Shown here piece after piece: positions 32,801 to 35,800 of a DNA stretch of 64,000 nucleotides. The translations under genes and the position numbers were made by a program. The first letter of the stretch is position 1. Every line of letters begins with the position of its first letter. This DNA is from Vicugna vicugna. Lineage: Eukaryota. The stretch spans positions 7,571,255 to 7,635,254 of the forward strand of contig MU063101.1 of NCBI GenBank assembly GCA_013265495.1, given 5' to 3'. The notes under the pieces are model-generated. The model was given only the letters and a program-made list of their open reading frames with translations, made no database searches and was not told where the DNA came from.

Positions 32801-35800
32801 AGGGGTCCAGTTGAGAGGTTACTGAGGTTTGGACGATGGGCAGAGTGTGGTGGGATTCAAGTCAGAGCCTGTGCACCAAAGCGCGTCCCATCCCGAGGCT
32901 CTACATTTCCTGAGGCTCTCCAGATAATCCTGGATTCTCAAGGAAAGGTTAAACCAAGTTCAGAAGGACCTGTTGATGGGGGTAATCTATTTTATAATGG
33001 CCTGGAGCAACGGCTTTTCTGGCACTTAAGATGCTCCTTCTGGCTCTGAAAAGGCTGTGCCGGCCCTGCGGTCTTGAGACGGGCTCTGCACAGCAGAGTG
33101 GCGTGTTCTCTGAGGACCGAAATGCCACTAGCTGCTGGCTCCATTAAGGAAGTTCTAGAACCACTTCTCTCAACCTGCAGAAGCTTCTGGAGGCCATGGG
33201 GCCCAGCCTTGTTTCCCGACAGGGTGAACAGTTGCCCCGCTTTTCAAATGAGGCCCAGGATCTCCCAGAAGCCATACACTTTCCCAAAAGTTCAGGATAC
33301 GTAAAAATTTTAAAAAACCACAAAAGCACAAGAGTTTGTCCATAACAGAAAGAGAAAGTGTGTTTGTATAACCTTTACTCAGATTTATCAAACTGCATGA
33401 AATTGGGATGTCAATATGGATTCTTTTGCTTTTTCCCATTTCATTTTTTTAAAAATTCATACATATATATATTTTTTTTAATGGAGGTGCTAGGGATTGA
33501 ACCCAGGACCTTATGCATGCTAAGCACACGCTCTACCACTGAACTGTACCCTCACCCCTTGCTTTTTCCCATTTCAAATGCAGCATAAGAGAAGGAAAGC
33601 TCCAGCACCTGCTTGCACGAGACCTGGTTCCTGGAGACATCGTGTCTCTCTCCATCGGAGACCGGATCCCCGCAGACATCCGTCTCACAGAGGTGAGGGG
33701 CCCCAGACCCTGGTCCGCTGGCGAGGCTGACACTTAGCTTATCAGAGGCAGGGGTCCTCTTTCTGTCTCTCACACACGTGTACACACGTGCGCACATGCA
33801 GATGTACGTGTCCACAAACAGGAAATTAGCAAGCAAGCTAATTTCAAACACAAAGCTCCTCCCGTTGCATTTCATAATTGATTTATTCTCATATAAGTAT
33901 AAGCCTAACAAATTTTGGCTATGTGGTCTAGTTGATAGCAAACTGCAGTGGCTAATGAAACCACAGTGGGGCTGAGGAATGCTGGAAAAGTTGCTTCCAG
34001 AAAAGGGCCCCACTGATGTCAGAGAGACGTGCTATCAGATTGTTTAATGATGAGGAGGGGGACAACGAGTAAAGCCAGAAAAAGTCACAAAGCTTTTGCA
34101 GTAGTGCTGTGGGGGAAACCAGGTGTGGGTCAAGCTCTTTCTCCCACCTTGGTGGGTCGCAGAGTGTCACAGCTTCATGGAACATTTCCCAAGTCTCTCC
34201 AGATAATCCTGGATTCTCGAGAAAAGGTTAAACCAAGTTCAGAAGGACCTGTTGATGGGGGTAATCTATTTTATGATTCCTTCCAATAATGCCTAAGAAT
34301 TGTTCAAAGCTTTTCCTGGTAAAAGTTTAAGCCCAAGTTATCTGCCTGATTTATTTATTTAAGGAGGACGCGTTCTCAGGATCAAGAGTCCGCTGTTTGA
34401 AGGGTGGCCTAGAGGTGGGGGGATGGGGAGAGGCAAAGAGGCTGGGAGCCAGCCCCTGGGCTCTGGGTTTACAGCATTCCTCGTCAGCCTTTGAAGTGGT
34501 GGCAGGGTCTAGAGGGCACTCCAGCTTTTAAACCCCTCTGCCCCTGACTTTCAGACATCCAGGCCGTTAGGGATGAGGGAGGTGGTGGGAGCAGGGTGAG
34601 CAGGAGGTGTTCCACCCCAGAATGGATTCCTCTCCCCGTCCGCTTCTCCCTGCACCAGCATTTGGCCTCTGACTCTCAGTCAAGGACACGTGAGTCTCAT
34701 TAGAGGAGCCATTGTCCAGTGGCCAAGCCTAACCTGCAGGGAAGGCTGGGAAAGCCAGTCTGACGTTGTCCACACCTCCCTGATGCCCAGGGCTGGGCCC
34801 CATGCTGGGCAGCCAATGAGGAGGACACATGTCTACCCCCAGGTGCTAGAGAGAGACAGTGCAGTTAAGGTGGTTAGTGCATTAGCTGGGGTCCTAGCAT
34901 TCATAAGCTGTGTGACCTTGAGCAAGTTACTTAATCTCTCTGTGCCTTTTTCCTCATCTGTAAAATGAGATGATAATGCTCATAGGGTGGTTATAAGGAT
35001 TAAATGACTTCCCAGATGCCAAGTGCTCAGAACAGTGCCCGGCATGGGTGAGTGGTGGTGCATGGTAGAGATCAGAGGAGCCTGGGTTTCAAATCCCGGC
35101 CCTGCACCTCCCAGCACCTCTCAGCTGTGAGGAAGGGACTGGCCTCTCTGAACCTCTTATTCCTCATCTATCAAGGGGGTTAACGTTCATTCCTCTCCCA
35201 TGGGGTTATCGTGAAGATTAAACAAGCCAAAACCTGCCACCTGCTCTTGCAGTGCCTGGTGTGGGGACAAAGTCACTGAATACCAGCAGTTGGTTTTATC
35301 ATTTATCATTACTGGTCTCTACAATGGTTCTTTGAAACCATTTTTTAAACCTCATATAACTCCTTTACTACTTCAGCTGGCTTTCTTCCTACCATGCTTC
35401 TATTACATTAAATTGTCATTGGTATTTGACACCACGAGGGCTTTGTTCAAGGCTCTCAGCCATGAATACCCTACAGACTTCCTTTTGGTCCTTTGCAACT
35501 CCGTTAAAAGCAAATTGTTTTGCTTACTCATGGTGGAATATTTTTCTCAGCTATTAAGCTCTGAGATCCAGGAGAACTTTATATACATTTCAAAGTCATC
35601 AAGGTCCAGGAAACAGGGTGGGCTTCCTAGGAAGGCAGGCTCAAGAAAGCTCTTAAAATAAGTAATGCAAATACTAGCCCGTTTTGTAAGTATGTCCAGG
35701 TCACAGAACATTTTCTCTTCCCAGAGTTAAAACCAAGGCCACGGCCTTGGTGAAAGGCTGACCTGAGATACTGGTGGAACAGGGCCCACTGCTTGCTCTC

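Follow-up and report, generated by a model that had tools for sequence, protein, structure and literature searches.

An antisense SINE next to exon 7 of camelid ATP2C2 as the probable source of the branch site of the exon

The 64-kb window analysed here, a stretch of the Vicugna vicugna genome (contig MU063101.1 of assembly GCA_013265495.1), carries ATP2C2, the gene of the calcium/manganese pump SPCA2, and contains, close upstream of coding exon 7 of this gene, a tRNA-derived short interspersed element (SINE) in antisense orientation. The explanation that probably accounts for the arrangement of the sequence is that the insertion displaced the old branch site of the exon and that the head of the SINE supplies a new one, the adenine at position 33554 (A33554) being the likeliest. 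On the stem of the living camelids the SINE entered the gene 25 nt ahead of the exon 7 acceptor, and the insertion doubled an 18-nt pyrimidine tract and shifted all the sequence lying upstream of it. A33554, a rare variant of the SINE family, was already fixed in the common ancestor of camel and llama, and A33542, within the motif CUGAA at position -41, may serve as a second or co-used site beside it.

The window contains two copies of the 18-nt sequence TTGCTTTTTCCCATTTCA and no more, one at 33426-33443 and one at 33559-33576; the copies are free of mismatches, and the element bracketed by them has the anatomy of a simple tRNA-derived SINE. The Rfam tRNA model matched positions 33482-33553 of the minus strand with 39 bits (gathering score 29, E 1.7e-6), ARAGORN reported a tRNA-Ala(AGC) at 33481-33554 on the same strand, and the sequence GGTTCAATCCC in the head of the SINE, again on the minus strand, is B-box-like. 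Read along the minus strand, the head is followed by the A-rich tail and the tail by the duplicated target; the 18-bp duplication and the A-rich tail fit target-primed reverse transcription mediated by a long interspersed element (LINE). The SINE ends 25 nt short of the acceptor of coding exon 7, and 7 nt (aatgcag) separate the downstream copy of the duplication from the exon. The SINE and the duplication together displace the sequence upstream of the tract by 133 nt.

Seven outgroups were compared, namely pig, hippo, brown bear and four mammal contigs (L031-L034). The contigs were reached through short open reading frames (ORFs) running through exon 7, and the loci of pig, hippo and bear through their annotated ATP2C2 proteins. 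The SINE was absent from all seven, each of which has a single copy of the tract, as exemplified by the empty sites of hippo, ttgctttttctccatttca, and of contig L031, ttgcttcttcccatttca. The empty site with its single tract copy confirms an insertion accompanied by target-site duplication, and not a chance repeat. The original prediction of an antisense camelid SINE, flanked by a perfect 18-bp duplication and with the pyrimidine tract doubled, is thus borne out both by the sequence and by the empty outgroup sites.

The window showed 99.2-99.5% identity to the alpaca ATP2C2 locus (GCA_048564905.1) and 96.5-97% identity to the locus of Camelus ferus (GCA_009834535.1), which places it with the New World camelids (lamines) and not with the camels. 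Both loci match it in the SINE, in the two copies of the duplication, in the GAACTG variant of the head and in A33554; within 33426-33583 the differences of alpaca and C. ferus from the window are limited to T/C at 33512, a single base in the tail and a TA run of different length. The split between Camelini and Lamini has been placed at 11 million years on the basis of fossils and at about 25 million years on the basis of mitochondrial genomes (PMC1939714). Since the SINE, the duplication and the adenine are common to both tribes, they are older than this split, but they arose after camelids had parted from the lineages of pig and hippo. The description of the element as a young retroposon does not hold, insertion, duplication and adenine all being common to alpaca and C. 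ferus. Because both tribes carry the adenine, the order in which it and the insertion arose is not recoverable from living species.

The assignment of the exon is based on protein matches. Its translation comprises 36 residues, which match residues 142-177 of human SPCA1 (E 1.5e-12) and agree at every position (100% identity) with brown bear ATP2C2, residues 173-208; in camelid ATP2C2 the exon corresponds to residues 172-208 and is the seventh coding exon. ORFs containing it were matched by PF00122. In P-type ATPases this segment comes after the second transmembrane segment and opens the actuator-domain part. An exon-by-exon mapping of alpaca ATP2C2 extends over 5494-60154, so that the window contains the entire coding region; the reading frame stays intact throughout, and the exons are 96-100% identical to the alpaca protein. 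As the exon is 109 nt long, skipping it would break the reading frame. In all nine annotated camelid isoforms, which come from four species, the exon 6/7 junction consists of ...PPECNC followed by IREGKL, and neither an extension nor a skip of exon 7 occurs among them. The isoforms vary in length (975, 965, 964, 933 and 918 residues), and none of the differences touches this junction. When camelid ATP2C2 transcript contigs were sought in protein collections, the matches were non-camelid ORFs and mRNAs, including those of pig. The nine annotated isoforms suggest that exon 7 is still spliced normally in camelids.

A motif of the type TGTCAAY was found upstream of the tract in six of the seven outgroups, with the variants tgtcaac in pig and L034, tgtcaat in hippo, tgccaac in L032, tgtgaac in L033 and cgtcaac in L031, and brown bear has tgtgatcaat at the corresponding place. 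In five of these six outgroups the distance from the adenines of the motif to the AG is 35-37 nt, and in L031 it is 30-31 nt. Its conservation and position make TGTCAAY the likely ancestral branch site. In camelids the adenines of the motif are now at -169/-170, and removal in silico of the SINE and one copy of the duplication brings them to -36/-37; the conserved motif, as the likely ancestral branch site, has therefore been pushed away by the 133 nt that the original prediction had put forward.

Four AGs lie between the old motif and the acceptor (33485-6, 33491-2, 33505-6 and 33523-4). According to the AG-exclusion-zone rule, an AG situated more than about 8-12 nt downstream of the branch point normally becomes the 3' splice site (PMC7969005). 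The nearest AG upstream of the acceptor, 33523-4, ends 59 nt before the acceptor G, which leaves an AG-free zone of 59 nt (33525-33583) composed of the SINE head (to 33558), the duplicated tract and aatgcag. The rule, taken together with the unchanged acceptor, would place the branch point in or just before this zone, and, since the zone is made up of the SINE head and the duplicated tract, the branch site would now be supplied by the SINE. The adenines of the duplicated tract, 12 and 7 nt from the AG, are too close to it to be likely branch points. From these relations in the sequence, a branch point within the SINE head appears highly likely.

The same four AGs bear on the possibility that the ancestral TGTCAAT (33413/33414) still acts as a distant branch point about 170 nt away, the SINE being looped out or the AGs skipped. 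Distant branch points exist in other genes (PMC7969005), TGTCAAT is intact in both camelid tribes, and three of the four AGs, one of them a weak GAG, fall into a predicted hairpin; the fourth AG (33523-4), however, is unpaired in the centroid fold, and 33491 (UAG) and 33505 (CAG) offer good acceptor contexts. The folding of the region was no more stable than that of shuffled sequence (z = +1.65 and +0.49), and hence a loop-out of the SINE that would keep the old branch site in use is unsupported. Moreover, the long AG-free pyrimidine tracts usual with distant branch points are absent here, and dog SINE insertions in a comparable position displace the branch site and break splicing (PMC3976383). 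Continued use of the old site is thus considered very improbable.

The old branch motif, the old tract copy and the T-rich antisense tail are followed by the four AGs (33426-33525), an arrangement that forms a possible decoy or cryptic 3' splice site. If one of these AGs were used, 59-97 nt would be added to exon 7 and the frame would be lost; none of the annotated isoforms uses them. The acceptor might be impaired and not rescued, with partial skipping of exon 7 or splicing to the SINE-internal AGs (33486, 33492, 33506, 33524) leading to frame-shifted, degraded transcripts, and with fixation of the insertion without exaptation. The plausible decoy just described, as well as the fact that cryptic acceptors are known to arise from the tails of antisense SINEs (PMC7951965), would fit such a state. 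Against it stand the normal junction in the nine annotated isoforms of four camelid species, the intact frame and the 96-100% identity of the exons to the alpaca protein, and the persistence of the insertion for more than 11-25 million years in both tribes, which make an impaired acceptor improbable.

Within the AG-free zone, CUCAC is the only motif to match yUnAy in five of five positions. The adenine of CTCAC, for which the match to yUnAy and the distance of 29 nt had already been pointed out, stands in the context cctcAcccc, at a distance of 29 nt from the G of the acceptor AG, and 78% of the bases downstream are pyrimidines. In the centroid folds the SINE head, including the CUCAC region, is predicted to be unpaired. 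A33554 may well be the branch adenine, although the assignment of this role to a single base is tentative. It is also possible, if rather unlikely, that the branch point is SINE-derived and that A33554 is minor or not used, its place being taken by A33542/A33543 (CUGAAC, -41/-40) or by A33535, A33538, A33548 or A33526, in which case the C-to-A change at 33554 would be a neutral private variant. CUGAA lies within the AG-free zone, matches yUnAy in four of five positions and can pair with U2 through three Watson-Crick pairs and one G-U wobble. Since A33542 is the family consensus, a branch site would have been available at the time of insertion without any rescue; the frequency of 2-5% found for an adenine at the position of A33554 corresponds to random decay of old copies, and no excess conservation was seen between lamines and C. 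ferus. On the other hand, CUCAC is closer to the branch-site consensus, lies at the modal branch distance and has the pyrimidine-rich sequence downstream, whereas CUGAA has a purine at +1.

Several observations weigh against a SINE-derived branch site at A33554. The use of exon 7 in camelids is taken from annotation models. The comparison of the lamine window with C. ferus gave no indication of constraint on the SINE head: the last 71 nt contain no difference and the 77-nt head contains one, and neither value is significant against the background of 2.9% (P about 0.12-0.2, and about 0.13 for the 71 nt). The predicted hairpin over three of the four AGs weakens the argument from AG exclusion somewhat. 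Finally, mammalian branch sites are degenerate and often multiple, and for this reason a motif match is weak evidence for a single adenine.

The rarity of the adenine was judged from the SINE family as a whole. The SINE core GGGATTGAACCCAGGACC occurs four times in the window against 0.06 expected, and in the host genome the family gave 2031 first-look candidates; a 28-nt degenerate pattern of the head had 1083 exact matches in the genome and its reversed control none. An adenine at the position of 33554 was present in 24 of the 1083 head-intact copies (2.2%), while in the first 100 listed copies about three quarters had C and about one fifth T. The copy at about 46914-46927, with which the exon 7 element had originally been compared, does read ataccctcccccc. 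Among the copies with the GAACTG variant the adenine was found in 1 of 15, the one being the exon 7 copy itself, and among GAACTA copies in 5 of 100. The view that the A at 33554 is non-consensus therefore stands (24/1083; 1/15 within GAACTG), and the objection that it might be the SINE consensus fails, because it occurs in only 2.2% of the family. A33554 is a rare variant with a frequency about that of random decay in an old family, and is no subfamily marker. GAACTG was considered as the mark of a subfamily carrying the adenine and was ruled out by the same counts (1/15 in GAACTG, 5/100 in GAACTA).

A second variant base of this copy concerns the AG-free zone itself. Where the family consensus reads CTGAGC, this copy has CTGAAC through a change of G to A at 33543, and an AG at 40 nt from the acceptor is thereby abolished; in the family GAAC belongs to the minority variants, and the neighbouring A33542 is the family consensus. 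It is tempting to speculate that the change of C to A at 33554, perhaps together with that at 33543, was fixed by selection after the insertion, in the camelid stem, as a compensatory rescue. The premise would be that a consensus-like head, with no yUnAy adenine at -29 and with an AG at -40, weakened the acceptor of a frame-critical exon. Such a rescue is considered unlikely. If true, it would provide a traceable point mutation by which a retroposon restored to an ancient constitutive exon its branch point.

The simple tRNA-derived SINE of camels is vic-1 (SINEBase, PMC3531059; Lin et al. 2001 cited there). The element described here resembles it in having a tRNA-like head and an A-rich tail without other parts, in its high copy number in a camelid genome and in the lack of copies at the pig, hippo and bear loci; the label vic-1-like is based on the SINEBase description of vic-1 and not on a consensus alignment. 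The ATP2C2 loci of the lamine window, of alpaca and of C. ferus were found to contain five SINE cores apiece, while the orthologous loci of pig, hippo and bear (208 kb in total) contained none. The coordinates of the features are collected in Table 1.

Table 1. Features at and around the exon 7 acceptor of ATP2C2 (positions in the window)
Feature	Position	Strand	Basis or remark
Coding exon 6 of ATP2C2	30205-30266		
TGTCAAT, camelid copy of the TGTCAAY motif, likely ancestral branch site	33409-33415	+	conservation, position
Upstream copy of the 18-bp target-site duplication	33426-33443	+	perfect match to 33559-33576; old pyrimidine tract, now stranded
Antisense tRNA-Ala-like simple SINE, whole element	33444-33558	-	bracketed by the perfect 18-bp duplication
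A-rich SINE tail (T/TA-rich when read on the gene strand)	33444-33481	-	sequence; length differs between lamines and Camelus (TA microsatellite)
tRNA-Ala-like head, camelid simple SINE (vic-1-like), antisense to ATP2C2	33482-33558 (77 nt)	-	Rfam, ARAGORN, copy number
Predicted local hairpin holding three of the four intervening AGs (33485-6, 33491-2, 33505-6)	33484-33512	+	folds
CUGAA, second branch-site candidate, A33542 at -41	33539-33543	+	4/5 yUnAy, no AG between candidate and acceptor
CUCAC, best branch-site candidate, A33554 at -29	33551-33555	+	5/5 yUnAy, non-consensus A, predicted unpaired
Downstream duplication copy, the pyrimidine tract now working at the acceptor	33559-33576	+	sequence match to 33426-33443
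AG of the exon 7 acceptor	33582-33583	+	exon boundary identical in all seven outgroups
Coding exon 7 of ATP2C2 (SPCA2)	33584-33692	+	109 nt; protein matches (see text)
Further SINE cores in ATP2C2 introns	39377-39451, 46848-46927, 46946-47001, 60720-60783		common to alpaca and C. ferus

Insertions of similar anatomy are known from the dog, in which SINEC_Cf elements have entered at -35 in HCRTR2 (Doberman narcolepsy), at -15/-16 in FAM161A (retinal atrophy) and at -9 in PMEL/SILV (merle) (PMC3976383). In these genes, as in camelid ATP2C2, a tRNA-derived SINE with its duplication separates a conserved exon's 3' splice site from the branch site. The putative branch site was pushed by hundreds of bases in the dog and by 133 nt in camelids. 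The dog insertions are recent and polymorphic and lead to exon skipping with disease or a visible trait, whereas the camelid insertion is fixed in all sampled camelids. Since it is fixed and the annotations show the exon joined constitutively, a replacement branch site would be required.

Transposed elements are also known to supply the branch site, the pyrimidine tract or the 3' splice site to new exons or pseudoexons, as described for antisense Alu exonization, for AluY in CEP290 and for LTR78 in F8 (PMC7951965). The camelid case is similar to these in that an antisense retroposon is the source of splice signals, predicted branch adenines among them. In those cases new exons or disease pseudoexons are made, whereas the camelid SINE would replace a signal of an old, frame-critical exon and leave the mRNA unchanged. 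In OGDH intron 4a, transposon insertions alter the competition between branch points (PMC7969005), and here too transposed elements add or remove competitors, the AG-free interval setting where the branch point acts. OGDH has distant branch points that were mapped by lariats and very long pyrimidine tracts; the camelid branch point, in contrast, would be proximal and is deduced from sequence.

The camelid insertion is thus a natural example of a known phenomenon and does not represent a new mechanism, because transposed elements have already been found to supply splice signals and to shift branch-point competition; general knowledge of splicing is not changed by it. Its interest lies in the outcome. 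SINE insertions between branch site and acceptor are known mainly as exon-skipping mutations, such as those of HCRTR2, FAM161A and PMEL in the dog, while in camelids an insertion of this anatomy became fixed more than 11-25 million years ago at an exon of a calcium/manganese pump that is both conserved and frame-critical. It may serve as a natural example of tolerance in which the inserted element itself would furnish the replacement branch site. The locus could also provide a simple minigene system for the rules of branch-point choice, and the exon 7 SINE is a clean presence/absence marker for Camelidae.

The four further SINE cores in the introns of the gene, two of which stand in tandem at about 46.85-47.0 kb, were not found at the pig, hippo or bear loci and could likewise be used as presence/absence markers for Camelidae. 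A direct repeat of 96 nt, with 94% identity between its copies, brackets exon 7 (32903-32998 and 34182-34277). The copy in intron 7 is ancestral and has orthologous counterparts of 78-85% identity in pig, hippo and bear, which marks it as a conserved intronic element; the copy in intron 6 was found only in camelids, being common to alpaca and C. ferus, and looks like a duplication of this element in the camelid stem. Some of the annotated Camelus isoforms have an insert of 19 residues between ...GPPAQ and SLGV... (residues about 777-796, window region 55492-55776), which the alpaca models lack. In intron 6 of C. ferus about 640 extra bases, as compared with the lamine window, are present directly 3' of exon 6 (window 30267-30419 against 25721-26515 of L036).

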